Of a DNA stretch of 64,000 bases, positions 1,111 to 48,470 are shown piece by piece (the first letter of the stretch is position 1; each line of letters opens with the position of its first letter). The DNA lies in the NCBI RefSeq assembly GCF_964204645.1, contig NC_134030.1, forward strand, positions 15,810,110-15,874,109. The letters run 5' to 3'. The position numbers were made by a program, and so were the translations under genes. The DNA comes from Tubulanus polymorphus. Its lineage: Eukaryota > Animalia > Nemertea. The notes under the pieces are model-generated. The model searched no databases. It was not told the origin of the DNA and was given only the letters and a program-made list of their open reading frames with translations.

Positions 1111-2178
1111 TGTATCGGCCCCACTCCGCGCGGTTGCGCCGCCGCGCGGGATTTACGGGAAGCAGCAGAACACAAACATGGCCACTCTCTCAATTTTCAA
1201 TGATAGAAATCGTGTGCATTTCAATTATTTCGGCTGTTAGGGTTTTAAGGCACAATATAAGTTGATGATGTGATATGGCGATGTTAATTAATGATAATTC
1301 CGCAGTGAAGCTAGTCACGAAGGGTGCCGATTGAGTGTACAGCTGCCAAAAACACTGAAATGTGCGTAGTTGCATAACTATTTGCAGTGAATTGCAGACG
1401 AAACATGAAGCCTTAACGGCCGTTTTAAAAAAAATTATACCAATCGCAATTGTAAAATAAAAATGAGATAGAACCTAAGTTAAAATTCTGGCCATTTCTA
1501 AAATGTTATTACTAATTCTTAGTCAGTGCGGAACGTTTAGTTTTCCAACAATAATGAGGGGTGGTAGATAGTCATGCAATTCAAGTCATCATTTATTACA
1601 CGTTACTTCCGTGTTGTTGAAAATCTCGCGAGTCCTGGACCAAACCCCAATGAACAATGTGATCTGTGTGCTGGCCACAAATTCATACAGATCACACTAC
1701 ACTACCCATTACACACTCCAGTACCCACAGCTTTCATATATCCATCCAAATATTTAGTGTCCTTAAAACTTGCAACAATCATAGATGATGTCATTAGCTA
1801 CAACTTTCCAATTGATTGTGGTTACAAAATATGCATAGGTACGAATATAATATAGAAATGCTAAGATATTGCATTATTCAACGCCCCCTGGTGGCCATAT
1901 ACAAAATCCAATGACCTTGAAACTCACCACAATCATAGAACACGTTATGAGCTACAACTTTCTAAATGATTGTGGTAACAAAATACGCTTAGGTATCAAT
2001 ATAATGTGGAAAAACTTTTTCCCACTTACGAATGAGTACTGGTGACACCAAGATGGCTGCCAATTGCGTCATAATTGGCTGATGAAAAATACCTGTCTCA
2101 GTTATAAAACATCCCTTTCCAAAGAATACCCATCACAAATTGCAATGAGAAATGGTAAACCAGTAGGAAGCTACAGGA

Positions 2179-4119: not shown

Positions 4120-4405
4120 TTATCTGTGTAATCTTTTATAACGTGCCACATTACTTTATCTGCAATTGTCTATGTATATTATGTATATTTGGTTTGTTTG
4201 GTAAACTAGGAATGAATGTGAATTGGTGTATATGTCTGTGTGTATGTGAGAGTGTATGGACGAGGGATTAGGACTAGATTAAGCCAACTTTGGCTTCTCC
4301 TAATTCCTCGCATAATTTATTGGTACATTGTTTTCCATATATTGTGTATTCATTTGTAAACTCTGTAACAATCTTTTATGCAAATAAATCATATCATCAT
4401 CATCA
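2179..4405 (+). mobile_element. 5'-truncated non-LTR retrotransposon (CR1/L2 group) with 7-bp TSD
   Basis: TACAGGA is duplicated at 2172-2178 and 4406-4412 and single in uninterrupted host copies. AATAAA at 4383-4388 is followed by an (ATC)n tail; RT ORF inside. Confidence 0.95.
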
Positions 4406-6427
4406 TACAGGACTAATAATTCGGGCCAAAATTTACATTTTTGGGCACTAAAAAGGTCACAGGACGGCCATCTTGAGTCCGATCAACCCAATTTTTGTTC
4501 TGCTGATGGGCCCAGGGGGGATTCACATATATCCGAAAGATCAAGGTAATTGATCAAAGCGTCTTCAAAATATCCCTCAAAAAGTTCAAAAATGTGTAAA
4601 AAGTGCTAATTTTGGTGAACAACAATGGCTGCCAGTCGGGCATCTTGAATCTGACAGGGCCAGTTTTTGGGCTGAAGATGTTTCAAAGTTTATTTTTGTT
4701 TCATTTGTTTCCAAGTATAAATAGTTTCTTTTAATTTTGAATAAACTATATATTAATACACCCAACATACACAGGTTTTCCAACTGTATATCACAAATAG
4801 ATCGAATATCTACAAAAATTGACAATTTTATTCTAATTTTTATTCCTCCCTCCTATTTTTGTTCCAAAGAAAATATTTTTCAACAAAAGGTCTTTTGAAT
4901 GAAAAAAAAAAGATCTTTCTAGGGCTCCGTACTTACTTAAATCATTAGGAATTAATGAAATACCAGTTTCATTAATGATGAAAAAACTCAAATGAGAAGT
5001 CTGGTTCATAAAGCTATCTGCTCAGATGAAATTTTCAAAAAATCGTAATTTTTGCCAATAAATATTGTTGATAATTGTGATTGATCATTGCCAGTCAGAA
5101 CCAGTTAATCACTCATACATGCATTTTAATATCTGATTCCTCCTTTACAGTGAACTTAGCTTTAACCTAGTAGAGGCTACTAGTATAGCCTATGTAGGCC
5201 TATGTATATGCGTAGGCCTAACAACCGGACAGATTGGTCTTAGGCCTATTGAACTTCAACCCACCTAAACATCGTATTCCTACACCTTATTTAACAGGGA
5301 TAGGTCTCTGTCTTATTCAATTCGTAAAATCGATTTCATTTTCGGATTATGAAGAAAGAAATCGTATTTAGGCCTACTCCGCATCGCAGCAATGTTGCCG
5401 AATTTTTTATTGCACATTTTGCTTGAAGTTCAATCCACGAGTCTGTAAATAATCACAACAATTATACTATGCTTGCTTGAAACAATAAAGCTCAGCAGGC
5501 CTAGAGGTCGCGTACAACTCAATAAACACTTCAAGCGACCTAGAAACGATCTCCTATCCACCGCAGCATCCGAGACGCTCACTCCGAATATCAAGCTTGA
5601 GTCCTGCTTACGGATAAGAATGTGTAATATACAGGCATTTAGTAAATAACCCGTGCATTTGGTAAAGATCGGTATGTACAGTAGGAAAAATAGAATATTG
5701 ATAAATGGTTGAAACTCGCGACCAAATCACTGCCATTTATTGATACCTCGTCACCACAACAGCTTTTCTCCGCTGCATCAGTTCAGCATGTTTAGTTTAG
5801 GCCTATACAACTCGGTACTCCAATGATTTATCGTAGTAAATATTCGATAAAGAAACTAACTGTTTGAAGCCCGCGGCCAAATCACTGGCAGTAATAGATT
5901 TATTTGTACTTGCTTTGATTCTCATGGCGACGAGAACTCGCAGTAGATCCGCAGAACAACGATGTAAAGACACAAGTTGATTCATCAATCTTTACAGCTC
6001 GACAGTGCTTATAATATTTAGAGTAGTAAATTGTATCCTGTGGAATGGTAAAGTGTACTGATGAAGAAAATAGGTAATTGTTAGAATTTACTGTTGGAAG
6101 ACCGTGGCTGAATGTGACGTCTGGTAGCAATAAAATTGATTATTTACACTTGAATTGATAATCGAAGTGATGAGCAGCCTCCAGTTTATTTCGGGATGAC
6201 GACTCAGAAAAATATGTCGCCTCATTGAATGGGGCCCAATTTTCCATGTTTACGGCCCGACAGTGCTTTTGTAATGTTGATTCATGATAATACGCACGGA
6301 GTATTTGTAGAACGAAGTGAGCTGAAGGATATCATACGGATTCTATCGGCAACAGTGGCAAGGTAACAAAGCCTATGTTCTTTTGGTGAAAAAAGTGTGA
6401 CACAAAATAATAATAATAAGGAACATG

Positions 6428-6520: not shown

Positions 6521-9500
6521 CTAAACGATAGTTTCGAATGAATCTGTTCATCACACTGAAGCAGCGGTTGATTCTCCTTGTAGCTCTTTACTGGTAAAGC
6601 ACCTAAAACCATGCTATACAGATACCGCGCAAATCAGACCCCCTGACAGGCTATAGTAGCCCTTGCGTCATTACGCTGTGCGAGCGGGGTAGCTGGAGGG
6701 GGTGTCCCCCCTCATAGTTAAAATTTTAGATTTTTTCCATCCAAGAGAGTGGTTTTCCATGAAACTAGTGTATTTTTGAAGCTGCATTACCGGCTTTTTT
6801 TTCATCTAACATGTTACACCATGGGGCAGCCATCTTGATTCTCACGTTAGTCTCCTGAGTCAGCAAATGAGATGGTTCAAATCCCATCAACGTTGAATGA
6901 GAACACTAGGGGCTGACTCTATTATCGCGTCCGGATAATGCGGTGAATTCCGTGAAATAGAGTGTAAATGGAAGAATAGTGGAAAACGACTGTGGTAACA
7001 GCTAATGGACTGGTTGTCTGTCAAATTCTGAATCTAGACTGTTGGCCTGTCGAAACGCACGTGTATCTTCTTAATCGTACAGCCCCACGCTTTCACACCA
7101 CCTCGCTTATAGTGCCCTATTGATTTTTTGAATGTTAATGTTAGAACAACGCTTATGATAGCGACACCAAGTGAGCATCATCATTCTTTAGCCATCATCG
7201 CTAAGAATAACGATGCTGGAATAGCGAATTGGAAGAGCTCACCCTACCCCCCCCCTTTACAATTACATCAAATTTACATCGACCTCAGAGACTACAAAAT
7301 CGCGAGCAAAACAGCTGATTTCCGCTGTTCCGCGGAACTCTGGGATCCCTGCAGAGGTCACCAAGACGACACCCACATGATGGAGGCAGGATCGAAGGCA
7401 ATGATCGAATTCAATTATACATTACACAATATTGGTTCATCTGTAAGGTTTTTAAATACAAATTAGCATTGTCTGAAATTCATCATCATATTGGTACAAA
7501 CATTTCTTTGTCAAGATAACCCAGGGAGTATGGATGATCAATTTTTGTTCGAATATTTTCAAATAAATCTTTTTATTAATAGATTATCCTTTCTGAAGAT
7601 TAACGGCTTTGTTGATATTGGTGAGCTACACGTCTTACTAAAACAAGGGCGCTATCTAACAGCTCTGCAGTTAAGTAAAACTCCAAATATTGAAAATTAT
7701 GCTGTGCATCAAGATGGAATTTTCAGCACAGTAGAAGATGTTTATCATCTTTCACTATACTTTAGTTAGAGTAAATCAGATAACAACGATTAATATCATT
7801 TAGTTCTTAACTTTTGAAGTGTAGACTGGTTGCCTGTCCCATTCAATATGGGACAGGTTTTGCCCGTCCGCCATCTTCCGCGGATTTTACGGATCCAATC
7901 AGATTTCAGTATTTCATCACGTGAACAATGTAACATGGCCGCCTACACTGTGTCTCGATTTACGTTCCATGGACCTCTTTAAAGTCATTTTTTATACCGA
8001 TGAAGAAGGAAATACCATTAAAACTGCCAGGTAACGCTTCTTGTTTAGCGTGTGGTACCGAAAATATCGGTATTCAATTCAGGATGGCTGCGTGTCAGCG
8101 CCGTCAGAACCTACCGGTCGTCAATCAGCAATTTGGACTGGATCTTGGATGGAAACAACAATACATACAATAGTACTATACCACTACTGACATACTTGCA
8201 GCCTTGCAGCAGAGGCTACTTGTTAGTTCACTCAATGTGACATCGGACATCAGTTGATCCAGTAAAAATAATGACATCAACAAGGTAACTTCACCTACTT
8301 AATTACTTGTGAACATTATTGAATATGAGTGCTATTTCACAATCACTATATTGATTATCTATTGTAGATTATTGTGAGCATTTTAGTGATGATTTTGTGA
8401 GTCACAACTTGTAGGGCGTTTTAAGAAATTAAAGTAATGCATATCAAATTGGCCTAACATGAAAAGAATAGATTGCAATGCATCAAGGTAAGTTTGAAAA
8501 ATGGATTCTGAACCATTAATTGTAAAGTCAATCTAGGTTTAATTGTAAGTGTGATATGTATTTCAATTTCAGAATGATAACATCATGCAGTAATCAAAGA
8601 GAATAAAGAATCAGCACTAGTCATGAAATGAGATTCCAAATAACAGGCGGCGGTGAAACTCCTTGATTCTGATAAACTCATCATCATCATCAGTTACATC
8701 AGCAAGCGCTGCTGCGCTGAGATGTTGTGTGCTTTATTTCCCCACTGCTCACGATCTGATAAACTGATGAGGTTTAAAGAGCTGGATTCTGTGAATAACT
8801 GCACTAGCAAGCCTTCAATTTGAATTGTGATTGGATTATCTGTCTGGTCGAGACTTGGTCTTTATGATTCTAAAGACACAATCATTCAAATCAGGGATAT
8901 CAGGATCGTCCCAATTTGTCGATGAAAAAAAAAACTTCTGTTCTATGTCATGAAATACGTAGTGTCATTGCTTATTCTCTTGTCAATTGCTTATTCTCTT
9001 GTCAGGGGCTGAACAAGATTTTGTACCAGAAGTGAACAATAAATATTGAATTCAGTGAAAAAGAATTGGTCATGATGAATTTTATGATCAATTTCAAGCA
9101 AAGTCAACAATGACATTGTGTGGTCCATGAGGAGAGAGGATATTGCGAACTTCCAGTGTGATCTGAGTAACTTGTTTTGACCAAGTCTCTTAATTTGAAT
9201 GTCCCAACTTGCTGTCTGTATCAGGAAATCAGTAGGCTGAGGTGGATCCAACTATCTGATCTCACAAAGCACTACTAAGGAGTTCAACAATTGTAAAATT
9301 TATTCAGATACTAAATGGTCATTTTACAACACTGTGTTAAAACATTAATTCACTTAATACATCTCACGAACGGTAGATATAGAAAGGATGTCCCCTGTCC
9401 GTTCAGAATGTTCTGTATTCAGTGACGGTCGCAGCAGAGCTCACCTCGCATTAGATTTCGATCCTTGTTAGTTTGTATTCCAAGTACAAAGTAAATTATC

Positions 9501-18345: not shown

Positions 18346-19161
18346 CATGAGCACGGTCGATGTTAAATCTCATTCAAACGGAGGCGGTAATAATAATTTC
18401 CGACAGAAACCGCCGCCGCACTCTGTGTCGTTTTCGACCCGGTCCCAAGAGTGCCATCAAAATGGCTTGTTTGTGATCAAAAATACTGGTACACTTGACC
18501 GAAAGCCAGATTTTTTAACTTGACGGCTCGTTCATATAACAAAACAGTTCTTCCAAGAGAATTCGAACTAGCTCATTTCGTTTATTTCGACAAGTCTTGC
18601 AAAGTCCCAGAACGAGAAGCACCATTATGAGTTTTCCGGTTTGCTCGGCTACCCGTACTGGCGGGGTAGTCTAGAGAGGCCAATGAAAACTCCGGTTTGC
18701 TGAACCACCCCTCTTTGCGGGGATGCGGTATGATGTTTCATCTGACAGTTTCAAGTGGTTAATGGCTGTTTCGTGCTTACAACGATGCTTATTACTTCGT
18801 GGTACATGGTGGTTTAAAAAAAGATTTCATAATAACACGCTCACTGCGTGGGCTTCGTAGAGAGACCACTACCTGTGACCTTCCCAAATTTCAATTGTCC
18901 TGTCCGATTTGGTTTCATCCAATTGAGAGACTGCCTTTTCCACTTAGGGCATTTTTGGATCACGTGACAACAAATGGCTTTTGTGCCCCTTCGTCGGGTC
19001 CACATGTTTCATTTGAGCTATAGACCACAATGGTGACACCATGATGGTCATTAACTGACCAATTGATATATCCCCGAGTCTGAACACTTGACTTCGAATT
19101 TCGGAAATTTACCATAATGTTTGTTTTCAAACTACTAAGGAATCATCATTGCAAATTCATC

Positions 19162-19420
19162 ACTGACCATCACTGACCACCACTGACCAATTGAAACTTC
19201 TTGAAAGAACGATATACCGGTACCGCATTTGATGTGAAACTAGAAAGGATTCGCCATTGAAAATTCATAAATTGACCATCACTGACCACCACTGACCAAT
19301 TGAAACTTCTTGAAAGAACGATATACCGGTACCGCATTTGGTGTGAAACTAGAAAGGATTCGCCATTAAAATTCATAAATTGACCATCACTGACCACCAC
19401 TGCCCAAGTGAAACTTCTCA
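19162..19420 (+). repeat. ~109-bp subterminal tandem repeats rich in TGACCA motifs (also at 32955-33432 and 34219-34580)
   Basis: TGACCATCACTGACCACCACTG recurs at 19164, 19273 and 19381; unit number differs among copies A, B and C. Confidence 0.85.
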
Positions 19421-22400
19421 AATATCGTGGTCGAATTCGAAAGTGCTTGTCGTCGTATTGCTATTTCTAGAAACCAGCAGAAAATTTTGCAACTGTTTTT
19501 GAATGGCGTTGACATGATGGAAATTTATTACCCATAAATTGGTTACACATCTGGATCACAGCACCTCACTTGCCGCAGTGCGTTATTTTCACTGCATAGT
19601 AATGCTTATACATAAACTTTTTTACTACTTGACGCGAATCATCTTAACAGTACTGCGTTTGAAAACTCAACGAATAGAAAATGTTTGCGGGAAGCGCCTA
19701 CAAATAAGTTATAATAAGATTAATTAATCGATGCATGAAAAACAATTAAATCACAAGGTGACTAACACCCGTCTTTCAACCAATCTGCGCGATACCAATT
19801 AATTAAATCATTAAACGCATTGGGTTCCTAATATTTGAAATCATGTGATACAATAGTTGTTCTTTAGACTTGGTCACTTTCATTTCAGACAACCGCGTAC
19901 TAGACCAGTGGTCACCGAGGCATTAACCATTCCTTCAAGTTTTGAAAATTCGATGGTAACGCGGATTCTTCGCCTCTAAAAACTGTTTCGTTAATAGTTT
20001 TCTTTATATGAAAAGTGTTCATAGGAATTGAAATTTGGAGTGGTATCAGTCACAGCTGTAACCCTTTTTCATTGTCAGTTCTTTTTTGGAATTCGAGTAG
20101 ATTAGTGAAAATATCAATGATGAAGTTCACTTAATATATCAAGTACCGTTTTTACTGTCGCATGCGAGTCGAAACAAAAATATCTATCCAACTGCATATC
20201 TTCGGGTATAAACTGTGATATCCTTCAGTATGTTATGAATATCTTTAAAAATTTGTGTTCTAGTATAATACCCGAAGGTTTAACTATCGGACACATAAAA
20301 GATTCGCCATAATCAAAGTTTTTAAGAAAATCTTTCTTCGAGAAAGAACGATCTTTAAAAGAAGGATTGGCATCAAACTAATCCATAATGGACTGTTGTG
20401 AATTTATTGAATAATCCACCTGAGAAATTTCGGTACTCGAAAAACGCCTACTCATATAAATCAAAAATGCATGAATAACTTGACGTTATTTGCGGGTCTC
20501 ATGAAACACTTTCGTGCGCTCTTTTTAAATCTAAAATAGCATAAATACATGCGTGTTTCGTTATAAACAAGGTTAAATTCCAAACGCACATGAAATATGG
20601 AGCCTGTATCACACGATATACACATCTTGAATTTCCTCTAACTACCTAGGCCTTTTCCAATTGGGAATGGTTCAGTTTTTTAACGGCCGACATTCAGAGG
20701 CACCTAAAAAACCGGTTGTATAGCACTTAAAATTTTCAGTGGAGGGCACATCTCACATCGACTCGGCTCGCGGTCGGTGGTTTAATGGGAACACATCTGG
20801 TTGTTACTAGTTTAATAGTTGACGAATTCAGAAAACTTTTTTCAAATGTCTTTGAACTTTTTAAACATAGTATTCTTCTTAATTACATTTCGCTGATTCC
20901 ATAGATATTTTTTCATGAAAATTGCTCCAGTTATAACGGATTTAAACATACATGTAAAATGATTATTTTCAAAATATTCAATTTTCTCCGATTTTGAAGA
21001 AATTCTGACACAATATCATCTCCAACCGACACATGATTTTACTTCGGCGCCTTTGAAGGGAGTGTCACTTGTTGTTGAGTTCATATTTAGTCAAACAAGA
21101 AGATATGCCTGATTCCTTTTTAGAACTTAGATTTCGACGGATATCATCAAATTACTAGAAAGGGACAGCAGCTTTCGGTCATCCGCAAAAAATACCTAAA
21201 ATGCTCTCCTAGGTTTATGGAAAAACATGTCACGAAACATACGGAAAATCCTTTGTTTGGTAGACTGAAATTATTGAACTCTTAAATAGCAACATTCAGA
21301 GAAACAAAAACATAAGAATATATTCTCGCCCACCCTTTAAAAAAACAACGTGATTTCAATTGAAGATGACACGTAGCCTCATATCAAATGATATGAACGC
21401 AACAGAGCCTATTCATTCTCTTTACGAGGATGGGTCTCGACATTCATAGGATACGATACGAGATTCGTGGGTACGAATGATGAATTCAACTGATAAAGCG
21501 CCAATTTCACTGATTCTTGCACATAAAGGTGTTTTAGAGTAATCTAGTTAACAGGTGTGTTTTAGGAGTATTTTGAATTTAAATTCAAATCGGGATTCAT
21601 GACGAACATTGAGCATTCTAGGGCTGGAGAAAGAAACGTGTGGGATCGTCCGCCAATGGTATCGCCAAAGAAATAATAAGGAGCCAGTCCGTGGTGGCTA
21701 TTGAAAGCGACGACCGCATGTGAATGCATTGATTGAATGACATCTCAAAAGTCAGATTATATAAAATTGAACATGATATATGGATAGGTTATTCCATATA
21801 TACTGGTAAAAATGATGCCCAATATGTGATATAAATGTTCAATTAAAAAGTAGAAACCGAATCCATAATTCAGTCTGGTATTGTTATAACATCAAACACT
21901 CAAATTTAATCCTTTGTTAGATTGGTAGCCAGTGTAGATGAGCAAGAATAGTGGTCCCTAATTTTAATGTGGACTGTTCAACAAGTTGGAGGTTGTGTAG
22001 AGATGAATGAGTTTAAAATGGAGTGGAATTTAGATAATACTGTTTGAATGTCTATTACTCAATCTTTTTTATTGATCATAAAAAATTGTGGTAAAATATT
22101 TGACTCTAGGGTTTTAGATTGTATCTCTCCACGCCAGAGGTAATCACGGATATTGGACTACACAAAATTCCTTGTGTACAGCTCAACTTTTAAATCCCTG
22201 GAAAAGCTCGCCACGGATATAACTCAGTAATAATTAATTTTCCCACAAATTCTCCCCTTCGAAAAAACTAAACAACCAATGTACGCTTGCTCTAAGTTTG
22301 CCAATGCACTATTGTTACCTTTTCTAGCTATTTGCACTAGCTGTTTGTCGCAAATAAAGGATAAAGGATATAGCTCTGGGACCCGTTTCTCAAAAGATAG

Positions 22401-23949
22401 TTTAGATTAACCATCATCCAATATGATACATGACTAATTACACTGAAAAAGATCAACTATGTACACATTTCAAATTTCAAACGATGTTTTATAATTAGAA
22501 AATTACGACACAACGTTCGATCTCTCACTAGAGATAATCTTTTTGAATTTGTACACTGAGTTTTCGTATCGTATTATCGTATTTTCAATTCTCTGCTTTT
22601 GAGTCAACAAGTACAAAGTTATTTTAGCAATGAAAATTTAATTGTCATTATAAATGTTAACTATCCGCTGGTAAACTTACTAACTTTTGGCAACTGACCT
22701 TAGATCGTGGAATGGTCTCAGGTGGCCTGCTGATCCACTCTTTATTTATACTACTAAAGAAATATACAGTATAAGACGTAAAAAGTATATGAACATATTA
22801 TTTATCTTTATATCGCGATAATTCGTGTACGTATGATTGAAAAACGATATTCTATCGAATATCATGGTACTTATGATTATTGTGTATAGAATCAATAATT
22901 AGCAACCCTCCACGGATACGAAGCAGCCTAAGTTTACATCCTACCAAAATTATCCTCGAAACTCTCAGCATTATTTCAAGGGTCGGTCTTAGAAAATATA
23001 TGAAGGACGTGCTCACAAATTAACGAGGCCAAAATTTCAAATTTTTACAAGTAAAGATAATATACTTCATGCTTTTGTTGCAGAAAAAAATACATGTCCA
23101 CAAAATGCAAATTGTGTTTTCAAAGTAAACGATTGAGTGTGGAATTGTTTCAAATTCAATGTTTTCCCATTAACACTCTGGTATTTTTCAATAAGATAAG
23201 TCAAACTATTGTTGTGATGGCCAGTTGAATACTTCATCATTATATTGAAAGATATGTTAGACTTAATGCATCTTTTCTTAGGCCTTACAGCTTTCTCTAT
23301 TGGTTAGCGTTGTGATCACTCAAAATTAACCATAAGTTTGAATTCTCACTGATCTACTACATCTCTATAACAAAAATATATTTCATTTCAGGCAATTAGC
23401 TTTGATCTGTGGTCAGGGGACAGCGGCTACGAAACATTTAAAACTACTACATTATCATTCCATCTATACATGTATATATAATATGATATGATATCTTCTT
23501 TGTTCAGTTTAAAAGTCTTGATCGTAAAAGTTTGACAAGTACTAACGAAGGATTCACTAAACATATAAATTACTTATGGGGGTTCTGGTTAGCACTGGTA
23601 ACTGGTCTGTACTGGTCAAGCATTGGTCAGTTAAACAATTTTTAGATTAATGCCCACATCATATCTAGTTATTTGACACCAAACAACTTAATTGTTTGCA
23701 AACAAATAATTTACTATATGGTCAGTACTGGTCATGCATTGGTCAGTTAAAAGACCATGGTCCACGCCACATTTGATACCAAACATGATTGGATTGTGTC
23801 GTTTCGAAAATTTATCTGTTGGGCAATTTGTGGTCAGCCCTGGTTCGTTAGGTTCTTATTTTGCGGGCATTTTATCTCGAACCACCGAAAGACCGAATCA
23901 CTAATTAATTCACCAGATCGTTAATTGCTGAAAATGAAGATTAGTGTTT

Positions 23950-24286
23950 TTTCTCGGGTAGATGTTGATGTAGAAGTCCTCTAAGTTGATTGTTCCGCGT
24001 GTTGACTAGATAGAAAGGAAGCACATTTCGAAACGCAAATTTTCCAGATGAGAGTATGGTCCTTGGGTATCCGAAGTGTAGTTTATGACATCGACGGTGC
24101 AGCTCCGATGAGGATGGGTTTCTCCGTCAAGGGGAGCGCAATCGGTACTTCACATCTGGTGCTGAGTTTTCCTAAAAGGAAAAGTTTTTACACGGGAGCA
24201 GTTTTGTGTTTCTAATATACAGTGCATAGGTAGGTCTGTGGATGCGTCGCAATCAAACGGACAGTGCTATGCACATTGATGGACCG
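23950..24286 (-). mobile_element. 337-bp retroposed insertion (SINE or LINE 3' fragment) with 15-bp TSD, present only in copy A
   Basis: TGAAGATTAGTGTTT at 23935-23949 and 24287-24301; empty site in copy B near 28331-28345; related fragment at 48335-48470. Confidence 0.85.
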
Positions 24287-24828
24287 TGAAGATTAGTGTT
24301 TAACTAATAGTCCTTGTCTGAACAAAATGTCTCTGGTATGGGTCCTATGGAATCATGTCCTTAACTGTACACCGTACTGTATCTTTGTACTGTATCTTTG
24401 TACTGTATCTTTTTATGTTCACTACTACCGTAATTGACTATGATGTTTTCAAGTGGTCTTAAGTACCGCTAATAGCCGAAAGTCGTTGATTTATGTGAAA
24501 TTTACATACAGCGCCACCCGTTGATAGTAAAACTAACCCGAGCAATACGGGTGTTAAATAGATACGCTAGCAAACCGGCATTCTCATAATGGCCGACTGC
24601 CGGGTAATCAAAAAAAATCTGATTGAATCCCCGACAAAACATCAAAAATCGTTGGAGAACTCGCTACGAAATATATGAATATGTCTCTCATTTCTTTTAT
24701 ATAACAATAAATATTAATGAATATGTCTCATTATGAGCTTATTCATTTTATATAATATGTCAAAGTCGAAACTTGGTGAAGCGCACAGCCAGTCTTAAGT
24801 TTTAATGAAAAAATAGAGGCGAGTGCCC

Positions 24829-25296
24829 TTCCCAACTCATATAGAATTCTACATTGTAAGAAAACATAGGTTTTGCGGGGGCACCTGTGTTCGGCGTGGT
24901 CCGTGGCCAAAGAAAATCACCCAAAATATCGAAGATCTATTCAAGCGAAGATTCGCCGTGATCAAATACATGTGTAGAAAAGGAATTCATTTTTGCGAAA
25001 AAAACATGCTTTGGGAGTGTTGATTACAAATTGAAAGCCTTGTTTGTTTTATCTTTCATACGACAATAAATATTATAGCAATCTGATATGTTTTACGAAC
25101 GGCTTTAATAGTTTTATATGTTTTACACAAGAAATGTGTTCCCAAGTTCTACATTGTAAAAAATGTAGGTTTTGCTGAAGGAAAACACCCAGTGGCGTGA
25201 CCAAAGAAAATCACCCAAAATATGATAGATCTTCCAGCGAATTAAGGGACCCGTGATTAAAAAAGAAAAGAAAATCATTTTCTGCGAAAAACAACG
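24829..25296 (+). repeat. Diverged ~310-bp tandem duplication; the second unit resumes at 27704-27740 after the MULE
   Basis: TTCTACATTGTAA..TAGGTTTTGC..CCAAAGAAAATCACCCAAAATAT occurs twice; TTTGGGA.TGTTGATTACA.ATTGA.AGCCT occurs at ~25010 and ~27710. Confidence 0.7.
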
Positions 25297-26926
25297 CGGT
25301 TCCTGAACTTCGCTGAAACACTGAAACGCTGAAACGCTGAAAATAAAACGCTGAAATTTCAGGGAATTCCCGAAAAACACTGAAAATTCTGGGAATTCCC
25401 GAAAAACGCTGAATCATGCTAGGAACCGACAATAGGCCTACACGTTTTGAATTTTTTTCCGGGCCGGGACCGCTGCCGAGTCCTGAACATTTGTCTCTAC
25501 CTAATTTTTGGTTGTAGAGACATGCATAAACAGTATGTGTGGAGCATGAAAACCTATCAAAACTTTATCACAACCGTACAAGCCAACGTTATTTTCGGTG
25601 TCATTGAAATTCGTTAATAAAGGTTCAACTGTCATTGTACTTAGCATAGCTTCGATTGGGTTTCATATTTCTACATTTTCTACAAGGAGGAGCATTAAAG
25701 GGTCGTCCCCGGGTAGAGGTCAAAACTTGGTTTACTTTCTCAACTTGCTGAGACTACCATCTGCATTCATGCCTCGATTTGTCAGGCCTATAAGAGTCGA
25801 ACAACATTTTCCCATACACAGACTTGGCTTTAGTGTAGATGAAGGCTAGGCACTGCACATTGTGGATAAAGTGGAACTCCAAACTCTCAAAATTAAACGT
25901 CAACAAGAAAGATCCAATAATTGAACGTTTATCTTAACTATATTAATTAACAGCTTGAAATATGCATTATACATTCCGCAAGAGTACACAAAAGAAATCA
26001 GTTAGGTAACTACATTTTATCCGAATCAAGCGTTAAAGCCACAGATTCGCTTAGCTTGGGCTTGAATTCTGGTTCCATTGCTTCGTATTCTATTGAAATC
26101 CCCTTGGTTACCTCGGAAAATCGCTTAGCTTTTAAAGACTACGAATTTGGTCCCAGGAAAACAAGTAAAGTGGGGTCTACTGTACATCAGCTGTTGACTT
26201 ATTTTTCTCTGGTTGAATCAAGTTATTACTGAAATAGCGTTCGTTTTATTTTATGTTTTAAAATTGTGTCGTTTAGCTATCCTGCTACAAATTTCACAGT
26301 TGAAGTTCACTGGTGGCATCTGATTGCGCGAAATATAATCACTGCTATAAAAAGTTTTTTCGCGGTATCTGTATGTCCATCTAAGCAACTTGGTCTATGA
26401 TTCCTCCAGATAGTCTAAAAATAAGAATTGATACATTTTTCTAACAGATGGTTTGTCATTTCTATAAAAAAAACCTAATGATTTTCTCACCACAGCAAAT
26501 AAATTATTCGCAATTGTTAAATCCCTTCCATGCGCACGATGAATTAAAAAGAAATTAAGTAAGATCCCTTTTGTCAAAAAGCCGCATCATCATTATAGCT
26601 AGCTATCAAATTTAACTTACCTCCGGTCTCCTACAGAGAATATCACAGTCGTCCATAATCATGCGTGACATGTTGACAAAAGAGAAGTGGCAATCATAAT
26701 CATATTTTATATACATTTGAAATGTTTAAATAAGATTTTTTTCGTGTCTTGTAGAAGTCAACCACATTCTTGGAATATTCAGCATAGTGTTTAAAAGTGG
26801 CTTGTACGGTTGTGAATGGGTTTTCATAGGTTTTCATACTCCTCACATACTGTTTTATGCATATAAATGAAGAAATCCCACACTTCGAATTCTAAAATTA
26901 TACGATCAAATTTATTATAATGAAAG

Positions 26927-26966
26927 CACAACGTTTCGGCTGTTGACTAACAGCCATCATCAGGTG
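26927..26966 (-). ncRNA. Minimal type I hammerhead ribozyme of the Penelope element
   Basis: Minus strand reads CAC-CUGAUGA-U-GGCUGUU-AGUC-AACAGCC-GAAAC-GUU-GUG: both catalytic boxes, a 7-bp stem II, short palindromic stem III (ACGU) and CAC/GUG stem I. Confidence 0.75.
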
Positions 26967-27182
26967 GAATGACCAGAAAAACAAGTAACAAAGCATATAA
27001 ACTCACAGGATCTAAAATAGAAGCAGTGTGTCAAAACAAAAGATAAACAGACCAAGCAATAAAACATCAAGGGGTACCGTAGAAACCACAGCAATTCTAA
27101 ACAGTTCAGAGTAAAAACAAATTGTGTAACTAAGTGAAGTGGATTGAAGAGGGTGGCGATAACAGAGTGACACATAGTGACA

Positions 27183-27458
27183 TTAACCCAAATCTAATAA
27201 AGAATTGATGTGTCTGGATAATAATTGGTTATGTGGAGAAAAACCAGTATTTAAATTAGTAGATAAATTGGATTTCGAAAGTTTACATATTAGGGCTGAT
27301 TCCACTATGTGTCTCTTATGAATATCTTTACAAGGATAAATAAGTTTCGAATTCTGAAAGTCAAATTGGTGATTGGTTGTAAAGACATGATTTGCTATTC
27401 CACTCTCAGGCTTTTGGTTTCGGATATCTATTTTGTGTTCTCTAATACGCTGACTGCA
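27183..27458 (-). pseudogene. C-terminal part of Penelope GIY-YIG endonuclease
   Basis: RIREHK....SGIANHV....HQFDF......KRHIVESALI......LNTG fits the PLE endonuclease pattern. The track's start Met lies in host/TSD sequence. Confidence 0.85.
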
Positions 27459-28052
27459 TGTTTTATGCATGTCTCTATAACTAAATTAGGTAGAGACTAA
27501 AGCACGGTTCAGGACTCGGCAGCGGCCCCGCTCCGGAAAAAAGTTAAAAACGTGTATTGTCGGTTCCTAGCACTATTTCAGCGTTTTTCGGGAATTCCCA
27601 GAAATTTCAGTGTTTTTCGGGAATTCCCTGAAATTTCAGCGTTCTTTTTTCAGCGTTTCAGTAATTCAGCTTTTTCAGCGAAGTTCAGGAACCGAAAACA
27701 ACGTGGGAGTTTGGGAATGTTGATTACATATTGAGAGCCTCATTATGAGTTTTCCGGTTTGCTCGGCTACCCGTACTGGCGGGGTAGTCTAGAGAGACCA
27801 ATGAAAACTCCGGTTTGCTGAACTACCCCTCTTTGCGGGGATGCGGTATGATGTTTGATGTATGCACAGTTTCAAGTGGTTAATGGCTGTTTCAAGTGCT
27901 TACAACGATGCTTATACTTCATGTGGTACATGGTGGTTTAAAAAAAGGTTTCATAATAATACGCTCACCGCTTGGGCTTCGTTGGAAGACTGCCTGTGGC
28001 CTTCCCAAATTTTAATTGTCCTGTCCGATTTGGTTTCGTTCAATTGAGAGAC

Positions 28053-31000
28053 CATTATGAGAATGCCGGGTTTGCTAGCTTATCTATTAAACACCCGTAT
28101 TGCTCGGGTTAGCTTTACTATCAACGGGTGGCGCTATATGTAAATTTCACATAAATCAACGACTTTCGGCTATTAGCGGTACTTAAGACCATTTGCAAAC
28201 ATCATAGTCAATTACGGTAGTAGTGAACATAAAAAGATACAGTACAAAGATACAGTACGGTGTACAGTTATGGACATAATTCCATAGGACCCATACCAGA
28301 GACATTTTGTTCAAAAAAGGACTACTAGTTAAACACTAACCTTCATTTTCAGCAATTAACGATCTGGTGAATTAATTAGTGATTCGGTCTTTCGGTGGTT
28401 CGAGATAAAATGCCCGCAAAATAAGAACCTAAGGAACCAGGGCTGACCACAAATTGCCCAACAGAAAATTTTCGAAACGACACAATCCAATCATGTTTGG
28501 TATCAAATGTGGCGTGGACCATGGTCTTTTAACTGACCAATGCATGACCAGTACTGACCATATAGTAAATTATTTGTTTGCAAACAATTAAGTTGTTTGG
28601 TGTCAAATAACTAGATATGATGTGGGTAGCGAGCTAACTTTGAAATTCCGCTAAAATGCATAAGATTTTTACGTAGGGTTTTGAACGAACAACGTTTCCA
28701 TTTGTAATTGTAACGTGCGCATTTGAGCCTGTAATTTGAGCGTGCACATTTCACACGCGTGAACGTGCGTATCGGTACCAACATGCGAGACTTGTCAAAC
28801 TTTTACGATCAAGACTTTTAAACTGAACAAAGCAAATATCATATCATATTATATATACATGAATAGATGGAATGATAATGTAGTAGTTTTAAATGTTTCG
28901 TAGCTGCAGTCCACTGACCACAGATCAAAGCTAATTGCCTAATATGAAATATATTTTTGTTATAGAGATGTAGTAGATCAGTGAGAATTCAAACTTATGG
29001 TTAATTTTGAGTGATCACAACGCTAACCAATAGAGAAAGCTGTAAGGCCTAAGAAAAGATGCATTAAGTATAACATATCTTTCAATATAATGATGAAGTA
29101 TTCAAATGGCCATCACAACAATAGTTTGACTTATCTTATTGAAAAATACCGAAGTGTTAATGGGAAAACCTTGAATTCGAAACAATTCCACACTCAATCG
29201 TTTACTTTGAAAACACAATTTGCATTTTGTGGACACGTATTTTTTTTCTGCACAAAAAGCATGAAGTATATTATCTTTGCTTGTAAAAATTTGAAATTTT
29301 GGGGAAGATTTTTGGCCTCGTTAACCTGTGAACACGTCCTTCATATATTTTCTAAGACCGACCCTTGAAATGATGCTGAGAGTTTCGACGATAATTTTGG
29401 TAGGATGTAAACTTAGGCTGCTTCGTATCCGTGGAGGGTTGCTAATTATTGATTCTATACACAATAATCATAAGTACCATGAGATTCGATAGAATATCGT
29501 TTTTCAATCATAAGTACACGAATTATCGCGATATAAAGATAAATAATATGTTCATATACTTTTTACGTCTTATACTGTATATTTCTTTAGTAGTATAAAT
29601 AAAGAGTGGATCAGCAGGCCACCTGAGACCATTCCACGATCTAAGGTCAGTTGCCAAAAGTTAGTAAGTTTACCAGCGGTTAGTTAACATTTATAATGAC
29701 AATTAAATTTTCATTGCTAAAATAACTTTGTACTTGTTGACTCAAAAGCAGAGAATTGAAAATACGATAATACGATACGAAAACTCAGTGTACAAATTCA
29801 AAAAGATTATCTCTAGTGAAAGATCGAACGTTGTGTCGTAATTTTCTAATGATAAAACATGGTTTGAAATTTGAAATGTGTACATAGTTGATCTTTTTCA
29901 GTGTAATTAGTCATGTATCATATTGGATGATGGTTAATTTAAACTATCTTTTGAGAAACGGGTCCCAGAGCTGTATCCTTTACTCCTGTAATAGAGGATG
30001 CAATCTATTTGCGGCAAACAGCTAGTGCAAATAGCTAGAAAAGGTAACAATAGCGCATTGGCAAACTTAGAGCAAGCGTACATTGGTTGTTTAGGTTTTT
30101 CGAAGGGGCGAATTTGTGGGAAAATTAATCATTACTGAGATATATCCGTGGCGAGCTTTTCCAGGGATTTAAAAAGTTGAGCTGTACACAAGGAATTTTG
30201 TGTAGTCCAATATCCGTGATTACCTCTGGCGTGGAGAGATACAATCTAAAAACAACCCTAGAGTCAAATATTTTACCACAATTTTTTATGATCAATAAAA
30301 AGATTGAGTAATAGACATTCAAACAGTATTATCTAAATTCCACCCCATTTTAAACTCATTCATCTCTACACAACCTCCAACTTGTTGAACAGTCCACATT
30401 AAAATTAGGGACCACTATTCTTGCTCATCTACACTGGCTACCAATCTAACAAAGGATTAAATTTGAGTGTTTGATGTTATAACAATACCAGACTGAATTA
30501 TGGATTCGGTTTCTACTTTTTAATTGAACATTTATATCACATATTGGGCATCATTTTTACCAGTATATATGGAATAACCTATCCATATATCATGTTCAAT
30601 TTTATATAATCTGACTTTTGAGATGTCATTCAATCAATGCATTCACATGCGGTCGTCGCTTTCAATAGCCACCACGGACTGGCTCCTTATTATTTCTTTG
30701 GTGATACCATTGGCGGACGATCCCACACGTTTCTTGCTCCAGCCCTAGAATGCTCAATATTCGTCATGAACCCCGATTTGAGTTTAAATTCAAAATACTC
30801 CTAAAACACCTGTTAACTAGATTACTCTAAAACACCTTTATGTGCAAGAATCAGTGAAATTGGCGCTTTATCAGTTGTATTCATCATTCGTACCCACGAA
30901 TCTCGTATCGTATCCTAAGAATGTGGAGACCCATCCTCGTAAAGAGAATGAATAGGCTCTGTTGCGTTCATATCATTTGATATGAGGCTACGTGTCATCT

Positions 31001-33975
31001 TCATTTGAAATCACATTGTTTTTTTAAAGGGTGGGCGAGAATATATTCTAATGTTTTTGTTTCTCTGAATGTTGCTATTTAAGAGTTCAATAATTTCAGT
31101 CTACCAAACAAAGGATTTTCCGTATGTTTCGTGACATGTTTTTCCATAACCCTAGGAGACCATTTTAGGTATTTTTTGCGGATGACCGAAAGCTGCTGTC
31201 CCTTTCTAGTAATTTGATGATATCCGTCGAAATCTAAATTCTAAAAAGGAATCAGGCATATCTTCTTGTTTGACTAAATATGAACTCAACAACGAGTGAC
31301 ACTCCCTTCAAAGGCGCCGAAGTAAAATCATGTGTCGGTTGGAGATGATATTGTGTCAGAATTTCTTCAAAATCGGAGAAAATTGAATATTTTGAAAATA
31401 ATCATTTTACATGTATGTTTAAATCCGTTATAACTGGAGCAATTTTCATGAAAAAATATCTATGGAATCAGCGAAATGTAATTAAGAAGAATACTATGTT
31501 TAAAAAGTTATCAAAGACATTTGAAAAAAGTTTTCCGAATTCGTCAACTGTTAAACGAGTAACAACCAGATGTGTTCCCATTAAACCACCGACCGCGAGC
31601 CGAGTCGATGTGAGATGTGCCCTACACTGAAAATCTCAAGTGCTATAAAACCGGTTTTTTAGGTGCCGCTGAATGTCGGCCGTTAAAAAACTGAACAATT
31701 CCCATTTGGAAAGGGCCTACGTAGTTAGAGAAAATTCAAGATGTGTATATCGTGTGATACAGGCTCCATATTTCATGTGCGTTTGGAAATTAACCTTGTT
31801 TATAACGAAACACGCATGTATTTATGCTATTTTAGATTTAAAAAGAGCGCACGAAAGTGTTTCATGAGACCCGCAAATAACGTCAAGTTATTCATGCATT
31901 TTTGATTTATATGAATAAATTTCGCTTCGAAATCTTTAAATTTCTCAGGTGGATTATTCAATAAATTCACAACAGTCCATTATGGATTTAGTTTGACGCC
32001 AATCGTTCTTTTAAAGATATTTCTTTCTCGAAGAAAGATTTTCTTAAAAACTTTGATTATGGCGAATCTTTTATGTGTCCGATAGTTCAACCTTCGGGTA
32101 TTATACTAGAACACAAATTTTTAAAGATATTCATAACATACTGAAGGATATCACAGGTTATACCCGAAGATATGCAGTTGGATAGATATTTTTGTTTCGA
32201 CTCGCATGCGACAGTAAAAACGGTACTTGATATATTAAGTGAACTTCATCATTGATATTTTCACTAATCTACTTGAATTCCAAAAAAGAACTGACAATGA
32301 AAAAGGGTTACAGCTGTGACTGATATCACTCCAAATTTCAATTCCTATGAACACTTTTCGTATAAAGAAAACTATTAACGAAACAGTTTTTAGAGGCGAA
32401 GAATCCGCGTTACCATCGAATTTTCAAAACTTGAAGGAATGGTTAATGCCTCGGTGACCACTGGTCTAGTACTCGGTTTTCTGAAATGGAAGTGGCCAAG
32501 TCTAAAGAACAACTATTGTATCACATGATTTCAAATATTAGGAACCCAATGCGTTTAATGATTTAATTAATTGGTATCGCGCAGATTGGTTGAAAGACGG
32601 GTGTTAGTCACCTTGTGATTTAATTGTTTTTCATGCATCGATTAATTAATCTTATTATAACTTATTTGTAGGCGCTTCCCGCAAACATTTTCTATTCGTT
32701 GAGTTTTCAAACGCAGTACTGTTCAGATGATTCGAGTCAAGTAGTAAAAAAGTTTATGTTAAAGCTATTAGCATTACTATGCAGTGAAAATAACGCACTG
32801 CGGCAAGTGAGGTGCTGTGATCCAGATGTGTAACCCATTTATGGGTAATAAATTTCCATCATGTCAACGCCATTCAAAAACAGTAGCAACACTTTCTGCT
32901 GGTTTCTAGAAATAGCAATACGACGACAAGCACTTTCGAATTCGACCACGATATTTGAGAAGTTTCACTTGGGCAGTGGTGGTCAGTGATGGTCAATTTA
33001 TGAATTTTAATGGCGAATCCTTTCTAGTTTCACACCAAATGCGGTACCGGTATATCGTTCTTTCAAGAAGTTTCAATTGGTCAGTGGTGGTCAGTGATGG
33101 TCAATTTATGAATTTTCAATTGCGAATCCTTTCTAGTTTCACATCAAATGCGGTACCGGTATATCGTTCTTTCAAGAAGTTTCAATTGGTCAGTGGTGGT
33201 CAGTGATGGTCCATTTATGAATTTTAATGGCGAATCATTTCTAGTTTCACACCAAATGCGGTACCGGTATATCGTTCTTTCAAGAAGTTTCAATTGGTCA
33301 GTGGTGGTCAGTGATGGTCAATTTATTAATTTTCAATGGCGAATCCTTTCTAGTTTGACACCATAACGCGGTATATCGTTTTCATATTCGAGAAGTTTGA
33401 ATTGGTCATTGGTGGTCAGTGGTGGTCAGTGATGAATTTGCAATGATGATTCCTTAGTTGTTTGAAAACAAACATTACATGATAAATTTCCGAAATTCGA
33501 AGTCAAGTGTTCAGACTCGGGGATATCTCAATTGGTCAGTTACTGACCACCATGGTGTCACCATTGTGGTCTATAGCTCAAATGAAACATGTGGAACCGA
33601 CGAAGGGGCCCAAAAGTGTTAAGTCATTTCCTGGAGTGACGTGATCCAAAAATGCCCTAACTGGAAAAGGCAGTCTCTCAATTGGATGAAACCAAATCGG
33701 ACAGGACAATTTAAATTTGGGAAGGTAGTGGTCTTTCTACGAAGCCCACGCGGTGAGCGTATTATTATGAAATCTTTTTTAAACCACCATGTACCACGAA
33801 GTAATAAGCATCGTTGTAAGCACTTGAAACAGTCATTAACAACTTGAAACTGTCAGATCAAACATCATACCGCATCCCTGCAAAGAGGGGTGGTTAAGCA
33901 AACCGGAGTTTTCATTGGCCACTCTACACTACCCCGCCAGTACGGGTAGCCTAGCAAACCGGAAAACTCATAATG
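28053..33975 (-). mobile_element. CATTATGAG element copy B, inserted in inverted orientation inside copy C
   Basis: Both termini intact; interrupts CAATTGAGAGA|CTGCCTTTTC, which is contiguous in copy A at 18920-18940. Confidence 0.88.
30360..30600 (+). pseudogene. Ancient L2-type LINE ORF2 remnant carried inside the 6-kb element (mirror at ~21760-22010)
   Basis: Translation gives LHNLQLV, ILAHLHWLPI*QRIKF and IWNNL, matching the L2 C-terminal LHWLP.xxRIxFK and LWNxLP motifs. Confidence 0.6.
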
Positions 33976-34773
33976 CTGCCTTTTCAAGCAAGGGCATTTT
34001 TGGATCACATATAACTCAGAAATGACTTACGCTTTTGGGCCCCTTCGTCGGTTCCACATGTTTCATTTGAGCTATAGACCACAATGGTGACACCATGATG
34101 GTCAGAAACTGACCAATTGAGATATCCCCGAGTCTGAACACTTGACTTGAGAATTTCAGAAATTTTTGTAGTCATGTTTTATTTTCTAACTACTGAGGAA
34201 TCATTGCAAATTCATAAACTGACCATCACTGACCACCACTGACCAATTCAAACTTCTCGAATATGAAAACGATATACCGCGTTATGGTGTCAAACTAGAA
34301 AGGATTCGCCATTGAAAATTCATGAATTGACCATCACTGACCACCACTGACAAATTCATGCTTCTCGAATGTGAAAACGATCTACCAGTACCGCATTTGG
34401 TGTGAAGCTAGAAAGGATTCGCCATTAAAATTCATAAATTGACCATCACTGACCAATTTCAACTTCTCGAATGTAAGAACGATATACCGGTACCACATTT
34501 GGTGTGAAACTGGATTCGCCATTAAAATTCATAAATTGACCATCACTGACCACCACTGCCCAAGTGAAACTTCTCGAATATCGTGGTCGAATTCGAAAGT
34601 GCTTGTCGTCGTATTGCTATTTCTAGAGACCAGCAGTATGTTTTGCTACTGTTTGTGAATAAATGGCGTTGACATGATGGTTACCCATAAATAGGTTACA
34701 CATCTGGATTAAAGCACCTCACTTGCCGCAGTGCGTTATTTTCACTACATAGTAATGCTAATACATAAACTTT

Positions 34774-35927
34774 TTTGACGCCTTATAAAACGTTACCATT
34801 ATGAAACCTAAACGATGTTAACCCTTCAGCGTCATTTTACAAACGACAGCCGTAAATCGATGTGCAAAACGTCACAGGTCTATGTGTACACAAATAAGCT
34901 ATCTGGCAAAATATTATTGACATAGATGTAGAATGGCTTCCTGTGATTATATAATGACCTATATTTGAACGTCGAAATGTTATATTGCATTGAATATCAT
35001 TAGAAGACGTATTGTAATAGTAAAGGATGTATGATTATATCAGAAGCGGCAGGCATAAATAGAAATGATAAGTAAATCGGATTATTCAGTTAAATGGCGG
35101 ATGTATAGACGATTTGGAAGTCTGATATAAAAGTCAGACCCTGACGTGGGCATGCCGGTGGAATGACGAAGCTATCTACGATGTGTGTAGGTCCGGCGTG
35201 AATTTCATCAGCGGCTACAATCGGTCAATATGAAAATGTGTAAACATATAATTTCAATATTCAAACGTTTTAGAAAATATGTTTGATATTAGGAGTATGC
35301 AGGTTTCGTGAGATTAGCAATTTGTAATAGCATAGCTATCATATACGGCTCCGCGTCCTCTGATGGCATGTGTATTAGGTGACAATTCAATTCAATTCTT
35401 TATTGATCCTTATTACATTGAAATTTCGGGATAAAATTCCCAAATTCAATAAATACAAATTTTAAAATAAATTAATATAACATACATGACACACGGGTAA
35501 TTCATACAGAACAACATAAGCATGTTATTTTAAATGACAATGTCTACTTCAACCCACCCAGACTCAAGACTCTAGGATATCGAGTGACAGCCAAACCCGT
35601 GGCCCGGCCGGCTGGCTAGGCCACACGATATGCTCGAAGTCATGATGAAGCAGACATCAGAAGAGCTCGTTCTTCAACCATGGAGGCAATGAAGTTGCAG
35701 ACCAGCTTAGAGGCATAAGTAAATGAAGTCGGTCGCAAGTTCGCGATCAATTATTGAGAATTTTCAATAAAAAAATTTAAACCACTACTAAGGTCGAAGA
35801 CCCGCTGTATCATCTACCCAATTGCCAAATCTCATCATTCCCCAAATTTCTTAAAACTTCGATTTCAAATTTGCAATTCCACATTAGCTTAGCCCAGAAA
35901 TTATACATTTTTTTCGCAGGCGTCAAA
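34774..35927. mobile_element. ~1.15-kb insertion in copy C bounded by a 10-bp inverted repeat
   Basis: TTTGACGCCT (34774-34783) / AGGCGTCAAA (35918-35927). Copy C homology stops just before and resumes ~25 bp after. Confidence 0.5.
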
Positions 35928-47340: not shown

Positions 47341-48334
47341 ATGATGACATGACCCAGTGATTACATTGTAAAATCGTGGGATTCTGAAACCATTGTTTTT
47401 ATGTTTTTTCAATACTTGATTATTATTCTGCACTAAAAGTCTGGTATTGCTTTTTAAAGTTTTTCTCAAGCCTAATCAAGTGAAAAGAAATGATGAATTC
47501 TGATGAATTTACAGTTGAACAAGCTTAGCTAGGATAACTAGGCATTTTTTAGGCCTAAGGTTTGTTATGAGCTGTCCTTAAGTCAATGAATATGACAATA
47601 TCAAATGAATTTTGTTACTAATTTTTTATTTTTGAATTTTTCTCTTCATCCCTCCAAGAAAGCTTTGAATATTTCATTTTAAGCTCTGAATTTGATTTCA
47701 TTAGGTGGATATCCTTTGGATTGCCCTTAAGAATGTCCAAGATTTGGAGGTACCGTGGTAGAAAAATCGGCTAGGCTTTACCCATTAACACGAACAGAAT
47801 CGCTATGTATTGACCATTACTCCGGAGAGAATTCTAGGGAAAATCCACATGTATCACAAATACAAAATAGTTCATTCGGAGTCAGTTTCCGTGTATTTTG
47901 AAGTAAACCCTGGTTTTTCATATGGCTTAAGATTTAATCAGGTGTGCCGCCAAAATCGCAACCTTTTGTCCCCAAAAATTCATCCTGTCCTAGTTTTGAA
48001 GGGTACTTCCAAAATTGGGATTGTCCCTGTTATTTATTTGGTTGATAAATTTTGTTTGATTTTTTGATTGAGTTGTGTGATCGGCGGTCGAGTTTACAAA
48101 AGTTTTTTGTTTAAATCGAAGTACATAAATTTGAAATTCGGTTCCGCTTCATTCAAACAATCTTCCATTCAGTCTGAACCGGCAAGCGACTGATTGGGGT
48201 GAATTTTCCTTGGCTGCCTAATTTAATACATCAAAATTTTGAAAACAGCTCTATTACCAGGTTGAAGATCATTTTGTCCACTTTTGATTTTTTTTGTCGT
48301 TTTTTACGTGAAAATAGTCCAATAGTTTATTGTA

Positions 48335-48470
48335 GTTTTTATGGGTAGATGTTGATGTAGAAGTCCTTTAAGTTGATTGTCCCGCGTGTTGACTAGATAG
48401 AAAGGAAGCACATTTCGAAACACAAACTTTCCAGATGAGAGTACGGTCCTGGGGTATCCGAAGTGTAGTC
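48335..48470 (-). repeat. Shorter copy of the retroposed sequence at 23950-24286
   Basis: GGGTAGATGTTGATGTAGAAGTCC...TATCCGAAGTGTAGT is nearly identical and shares the same left (3') end. Confidence 0.85.

Follow-up and report, generated by a model that had tools for sequence, protein, structure and literature searches.

How does an element with exact inverted ends enter a genome and leave almost nothing duplicated at its target? The question is raised by a 64,000-nucleotide stretch (the window) on contig 6 of the Tubulanus polymorphus assembly (268 Mb in 77 contigs). From the letters of this stretch, the original prediction had described three copies of a family with terminal inverted repeats (TIRs) that integrates without a conventional target-site duplication (TSD), and had proposed a tyrosine-recombinase (Crypton-like) or otherwise unclassified mechanism. 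A repeat search and direct reading place all three copies where they had been predicted. We then read copies of the same family across the genome, together with their flanks and empty sites.

Anatomy of the family and its copies

Both termini of each copy consist of CATTATGAG, four variable bases and CCGGTTTGCT (23 nt). We refer to the terminus with the spacer TTTT as End1 and to the terminus with the spacer AATG as End2. Copy A (18623–24591, plus strand, 5969 bp, running from End1 to End2) is complete, with both ends read directly; it is non-coding and 94–97% identical to other copies. Its End1 repeat (18623–18645, plus strand) reads CATTATGAG-TTTT-CCGGTTTGCT, and its End2 repeat (24569–24591), read on the minus strand, is CATTATGAG-AATG-CCGGTTTGCT. 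The family termini are CATTATGAG...CTCATAATG, each element starting with 5'-CA and finishing with TG-3'. A second end-like motif of End1 (..ATGAAAACTCCGGTTTGCT) lies at family positions 57–79, corresponding to 18679–18701 on the plus strand in A, and is a candidate transposase-binding site. The repeat search also found an internal tandem repeat near End1 of A (19120–19422, plus strand, three copies of a unit of about 109 bp). In addition, A alone carries a 338-bp insert (23950–24287, plus strand) that is absent from B and from all other copies. The insert is bracketed by a 14-bp direct repeat (23936–23949 and 24288–24301) and is a separate element, outside the TIR family.

Copy B (28053–33975, minus strand) is also complete, and is inverted and nested in copy C. 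The left part of C (27741–28052, plus strand) covers family positions 1–309, its last base at 28052 being the duplicated C. The right part (33976–34776, plus strand) covers family positions 309–1001, starting with the second duplicated C and truncated at about 34776. As had been predicted, the End2 repeat of B has one extra G, which is private to this copy.

The exact 23-nt end pattern has 280 matches in the 268-Mb genome, versus 0 for a reversed control. The family numbers about 140 copies or more. Besides the standard layout of 5.8 kb, it includes length classes of 6.2 and 6.46 kb and copies of 7–14 kb. Querying the genome with 200-bp ends yielded about 200 candidates, and the best 80 alignments all extend to the last base. 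We read 31 loci, including 16 complete copies. The flanks of these 16 (16/16) show no relationship to one another; homology thus ends where the termini were proposed, which answers a check that the original prediction had set for itself. Most copies are located centrally in the large contigs, and pairwise divergence among 13 full copies is 1.5–5.6%, in a family that is moderately young and abundant. An older subfamily shares about 85% identity with A (BLAST, gaps included). When only substitutions are considered, the two subfamilies are 96% identical over the ~200-bp termini versus about 89% over most of the interior, indicating that the ends are constrained while the interior drifts. Nested copies and empty sites prove that the family has been mobile. 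In 13 cases, termini of different copies are at most 1 kb apart, so copies tend to insert in or beside older ones. One copy (L020) is inserted within a Pao-type retroelement gene. A scan of metagenomes for the end motif returned two matches only, both due to chance.

Target duplications of 0–4 bp

Four empty sites could be found. For B in C, the empty site is read from A (GAGAGA-C-TGCC), and the filled site is longer by exactly one added C, as the original prediction had read it. For an old-subfamily copy elsewhere (C3:17979500), a paralogous empty site lies in the window itself (5740–5842, plus strand), and the filled site has gained one base (A). The copy at L001 is inserted in a 31-bp satellite, where the empty site is an intact unit that is present in a paralogue too, and nothing was added (+0). 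At L015, within a short repeat, AGT occurs once in three neighbouring units and twice in the filled site (+3). None of the four sites (0/4) shows target deletion or filler DNA. Other searches gave no usable site: the flank of A is unique, with no match to it across the genome; the repeats matching L017 end before the junction; and for the copy at C3:17419473, the right-flank repeat in the window ends exactly at the insertion point and is uninformative.

An internal control is provided by three family copies of about 21.6 kb, each of which holds an insert of 15–16.5 kb at a different family position. All three inserts begin with AG and end with CT, and each is bordered by a clean 6-bp duplication when family sequence is used as the empty site, and two of the three contain a long open reading frame (ORF; 1190 and 1333 aa), the 1333-aa one matching protein-primed DNA polymerase B. 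These are ordinary Polintons. Because all three show 6 bp, the method evidently recovers a normal duplication in the same DNA.

Among the 16 fully read copies, the bases immediately to the left and right of the element are the same in 9, another 3 have flank repeats of 3 or 4 bp, and 4 have none. The 4-bp repeats are those at L014 and L017, read from the flanks only. Finding three repeats of 3–4 bp among the 7 non-matching copies has a chance of about 4e-4, as estimated from base composition. Copy A, read directly, has C on one side, G on the other and no duplication, in agreement with the original prediction. That both complete right ends in the window are followed by G, which had also been pointed out, is true of these two copies and is explained by chance, as the base after End2 genome-wide is A in 26, G in 22, T in 19 and C in 15.

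For a genome-wide test of the single base, four pattern searches were run, each fixing one outside base, which gave the position, strand, end type and outside base for all 280 termini. Pairing them gave 83 End1/End2 pairs, and the 82 non-duplicate pairs were used. In 54 of the 82, the same base lies outside both ends, compared with 20.3 on shuffling (binomial p 5e-15). All four bases occur as the duplicated base (T 15, C 14, G 14, A 11). After correction for chance, about 55% of insertions have a true 1-bp duplication. We also considered a TIR one base longer, as the C...G around A would allow, and rejected it: complementary outside bases occur in 10 of the 28 non-matching pairs, which is not above chance. 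Some mismatched pairs are rearrangements, as at L002, an apparent zero case in which a full copy is directly abutted by a second partial copy, so that the flank is not target and the insertion is not clean.

The target duplication of this family is therefore short and variable, ranging from 0 to 4 bp and most often 1 bp. The expectation of one fixed TSD length, general for class II TIR elements, fails here, as lengths of 0, 1, 3 and probably 4 bp occur. The claim of "no conventional TSD" holds in the sense that the family does not make the 2–8-bp duplications known from hAT, P, Transib and CACTA and that most copies do not share a fixed duplication of at least 2 bp. It has to be amended in that most insertions do duplicate one target base, given the excess of one-base matches and the two empty sites with one added base.

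No target consensus emerged in the aligned targets of the 16 copies, and neither an AAATTT motif nor the TA flanks of the Tc1/mariner type were present at these 16 sites. The targets share nothing with the sequence that joined ends would form. Two termini meet end to end at just one place in the assembly, where an old copy (76% identity) and a young one are separated by a 6-bp spacer. We also looked inside the element for a repeat of the joined ends, as in DIRS elements, and none exists. Subterminal hairpins were likewise dismissed, as folding is no better than for shuffled sequence.

The missing enzyme and comparison with known groups

All inspected copies are non-coding. The longest ORF in A is 83 aa, and Pfam identified no domain in the 8 ORFs of at least 55 aa of a standard copy. 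In this respect the original prediction was right that no transposase or recombinase ORF is visible and that the copies are non-autonomous. It had suggested searching long copies for tyrosine-recombinase or DDE ORFs; in the longer inspected copies, considered as possible autonomous partners, the extra length is made up of nested Polintons, LINEs or Pao elements and includes no transposase. A DDE-type transposase in an autonomous copy was thus not found among the 16 fully read copies or near the 280 termini. None of 287 domain matches to hAT, PIF/Harbinger, CACTA, P and tyrosine-recombinase models lies within 10 kb inward of these termini. For four of the five enzyme families every candidate was scored, and the 287 comprise 150 scored matches for DDE_Tnp_4, 79 for hAT, 33 for tyrosine recombinase (Phage_integrase), 20 for P-type and 5 for Transposase_21. 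A tyrosine recombinase of distant sequence could escape the Phage_integrase model. The Pfam model for RAG1 had no match in the genome. Patterns for variant ends (another base after the repeat, longer spacers, or CCGG followed by non-T) recovered only point mutants of End1 and End2, and each CATTATGAG-NNNN-CCGG site in the genome is End1 or End2. Hidden exons are unlikely, because the old and young subfamilies have diverged evenly across the interior.

The family resembles several described groups in part. The Spy group (PIF/Harbinger-ISL2EU-Spy, or PHIS, superfamily) has a DDE enzyme and inserts strictly inside AAATTT with a 0-bp duplication (PMC4482050). It shares with our family an invertebrate setting, cut-and-paste movement, inverted ends and the absence, or near absence, of a duplication. 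However, in our family a target motif is absent, a 1-bp duplication is the usual outcome, and 0 of the 150 scored DDE_Tnp_4 matches are near a terminus. In the literature searched, Spy is the one group found without duplication, and it is bound to its fixed target motif. Duplication length can vary within superfamilies, for instance 2–4 bp in CACTA-Mirage-Chapaev (CMC; PMC4482050). Each CMC group has one fixed length, and CMC ends are of the CAC type. Likenesses to CMC include short duplications, 5'-CA ends and repeated subterminal motifs, with CATTA differing from CACTA at one position. On the other hand, the third base of the family is T, not C, its mode is 1 bp with 0 also occurring, its 3–4-bp class is a minority, and 0 of the 5 Transposase_21 matches are near a terminus.

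The 5'-CA...TG-3' termini also recall hAT and P elements. The P-element end, CATGATGAA, looks similar to CATTATGAG, and P elements make duplications of 7–8 bp. Those of hAT fall within the 5–8-bp range of hAT and P together (PMC4482050). Such 5–8-bp duplications are absent in our family, and none of the 79 hAT and 20 P-type matches is near a terminus. Tc1/mariner differs in that our family is not flanked by a duplicated TA. As to Transib, its heptamer is CACWATG, which CATTATG of our family resembles, and the 3+1+3 palindrome is like that of the RSS heptamer. RAG-like elements are known in ribbon worms; the consensus of their ends begins CACTWMC, CAC is invariant at the start of both RAG-like and Transib ends, and in protostomes the RAG-like duplication is always 5 bp (PMC7204232). 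In contrast, all ends of our family begin CAT, and its duplications are 0–4 bp, not 5. The original prediction had thus correctly set the family apart from the 2–8-bp duplications of hAT, P, Transib and CACTA.

A proposed nearly blunt integration and its alternatives

The explanation that we favour, and consider somewhat probable, is that the family is a non-autonomous class II DNA transposon, of the inverted-end, cut-and-paste type, served by an enzyme in trans that joins it to the target almost bluntly. Cut-and-paste in trans is the simplest reading because the ends are exact and symmetric, a subterminal motif is present, about 200 bp at each end is conserved, targets are free and duplication lengths peak sharply at 1 bp. 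Under this model, a transposase encoded elsewhere would excise the element after binding to its 23-nt ends and to the subterminal CCGGTTTGCT repeat. The 3' ends (...TG-3') would then be joined to target phosphates on opposite strands, 0–4 and usually 1 bp apart, the tiny duplication arising from gap repair. The enzyme would probably be of the DDE/RNase-H type, with a target stagger that is nearly blunt and loosely fixed.

Several observations stand against this model. A transposase of fixed geometry would not ordinarily give a spread of 0–4 bp in a single family, no transposase was found, and the empty sites number only four. One alternative is excision by a transposase giving blunt, protected ends, which host end joining then reinserts at chance breaks with fill-in of 0–4-nt overhangs. 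The varying lengths (0, 1, 3 and 4), the lack of a target consensus and the way in which copies cluster in or beside older family members and other repeats speak for it. We nevertheless consider it unlikely, as every inspected terminus is intact to its last base, neither target deletion nor filler DNA occurs at the four empty sites, and the sharp 1-bp mode points to a stagger set by an enzyme rather than to random breaks. Some other kind of enzyme could instead act on the conserved ~200-bp ends, for instance an HUH/rolling-circle nuclease or an undescribed one, given that no known transposase type occurs in or next to any copy. To our knowledge, HUH elements have asymmetric ends, fixed target motifs and no duplications, whereas the ends of this family are symmetric, its target is free and duplication is usual; we regard this alternative as rather improbable.

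Cryptons and other tyrosine-recombinase elements, for which the original prediction had argued, have less in their favour still. In that scheme, an excised circle with palindromic joined ends would recombine with the target. A duplication that is tiny or, in some copies, absent would fit, as would the perfect palindrome that joined ends would make, and the genome does contain tyrosine-recombinase genes. However, we know of no Cryptons with terminal inverted repeats, while this family has true 23-nt TIRs plus a subterminal repeat resembling a binding site. Moreover, Cryptons recombine through a short core shared with the target, which site-specific recombination needs, and no such core is shared here: the duplicated base may be any of the four and the targets are unlike the junction. 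The predicted circle junction with a 1-nt spacer was not recovered either, as the sole end-to-end junction joins copies of different age across 6 bp and an internal junction copy is absent, and 0 of the 33 recombinase matches are near any terminus. We therefore regard this mechanism as unsupported and quite improbable. Least probable of all, in our estimation, is a conventional fixed duplication of at least 2 bp that mutation, inter-copy recombination or misplaced ends would have obscured. Some pairs are indeed rearranged (as at L002), and copies have diverged by 1.5–5.6%, but divergence this low cannot have erased longer duplications in nearly all copies. In addition, the four empty sites set the ends to the base (+1, +1, +0 and +3), and the nested Polintons in the same DNA keep their 6-bp duplications.

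Returning to cut-and-paste in trans, how far the enzyme would lie from known groups is a separate matter. Among the characters by which superfamilies of DNA transposons are told apart, duplication length is one of the main ones, and it reflects enzyme–target geometry. No transposon group was found described with a footprint of 0–4 bp and a 1-bp mode in the literature texts searched, and an exact-phrase search of 8.4 million texts for wording on a 1-bp TSD found no paper. We tentatively raise the possibility of an undescribed transposase lineage whose strand-transfer sites are almost opposite each other, leaving a duplication of 0–4 bp and most often 1 bp, which would make this a new kind of eukaryotic DNA transposon at the superfamily level. 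Identification of the enzyme has a fair chance of revealing something farther from the known groups.

The combination of exact ends, free targets and a 0–4-bp duplication therefore points to either an unusually tight and flexible stagger or an integration that leans on host repair. Annotation pipelines that demand a duplication of at least 2 bp will miss or misplace such families, and identifying the enzyme behind this one would provide a further example of how the stagger of a transposase is determined.

Clustering and spacing of family copies

Genome-wide, there are 13 cases in which termini belonging to different copies of the family are less than 1 kb apart (for example, C8:4398662/4398698 and C3:14671820/14672075), and at one additional place (C24:117796-117819) they are separated by just 6 bp. 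Several nested insertions lie within a few hundred bp of the End1 terminus of the resident copy. New insertions of the family seem to occur inside or next to older members. A separate arrangement was seen at L002:2214-10000 (C10:6197957 onward), where a complete copy directly abuts a second, identically oriented one, which begins internally, about 1.8 kb from End1; this pair looks like a product of aberrant transposition or of unequal exchange. On C11, four End2 termini at 339249-343926 are spaced exactly 1559 bp apart, which suggests a tandem array made from an end fragment, and other family copies on this contig recur every 45-85 kb, resembling large segmental repeats.

Other repeats in and around family copies

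Copy A, the complete copy at window positions 18623-24591 (+), carries a private insert of 338 bp (23950-24287) with a 14-bp direct repeat on both sides (23936-23949 and 24288-24301). The length of this flanking repeat suggests that the insert is a retroposed element; a piece 91% similar to the insert is found at 48324-48475. Within the family copy of L018, a 4-kb element (2120-6155) has a 38-bp inverted repeat starting GCTGCCCTAGCATG and is apparently flanked by a 2-bp duplication (AC). It contains an open ORF of 720 aa, for which the sole Pfam match, a weak one, is to DUF7869. The old family copy of L014 contains a small, unclassified insert of about 200 bp (1312-1500 and 7024-7033), with a 4-bp duplication (CAAT) and CACTATG twice in its start; the young family copy of this locus is inserted within it. 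The 31-bp tandem repeat (unit GAATTGTCGCGGGCGACAAAACCAAAATATT; L001:2560-2757 and 8501-8560, L024:1-130), which supplied the empty site against which the L001 insertion shows zero duplication, is itself contained in another dispersed repeat.

Polintons nested in the family

The family copies at C3:17419473-17441080 (L021-L023), C3:17979500-18001142 (L024-L026) and C10:8978675-9000444 (L027/L028/L011) each contain a Polinton, inserted at a different family position in each case. These Polintons are 15-16.5 kb long, have AG...CT ends and are flanked by 6-bp duplications. Two of the three have long ORFs (1190 aa and 1333 aa), the latter matching protein-primed DNA polymerase B. Two further family copies (C1:12617917 and C9:6511870) measure 21.1-21.3 kb. 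Were these two also to hold Polintons, the resulting 5/83 copies would represent a strong excess, given that the family makes up about 0.3% of the genome.
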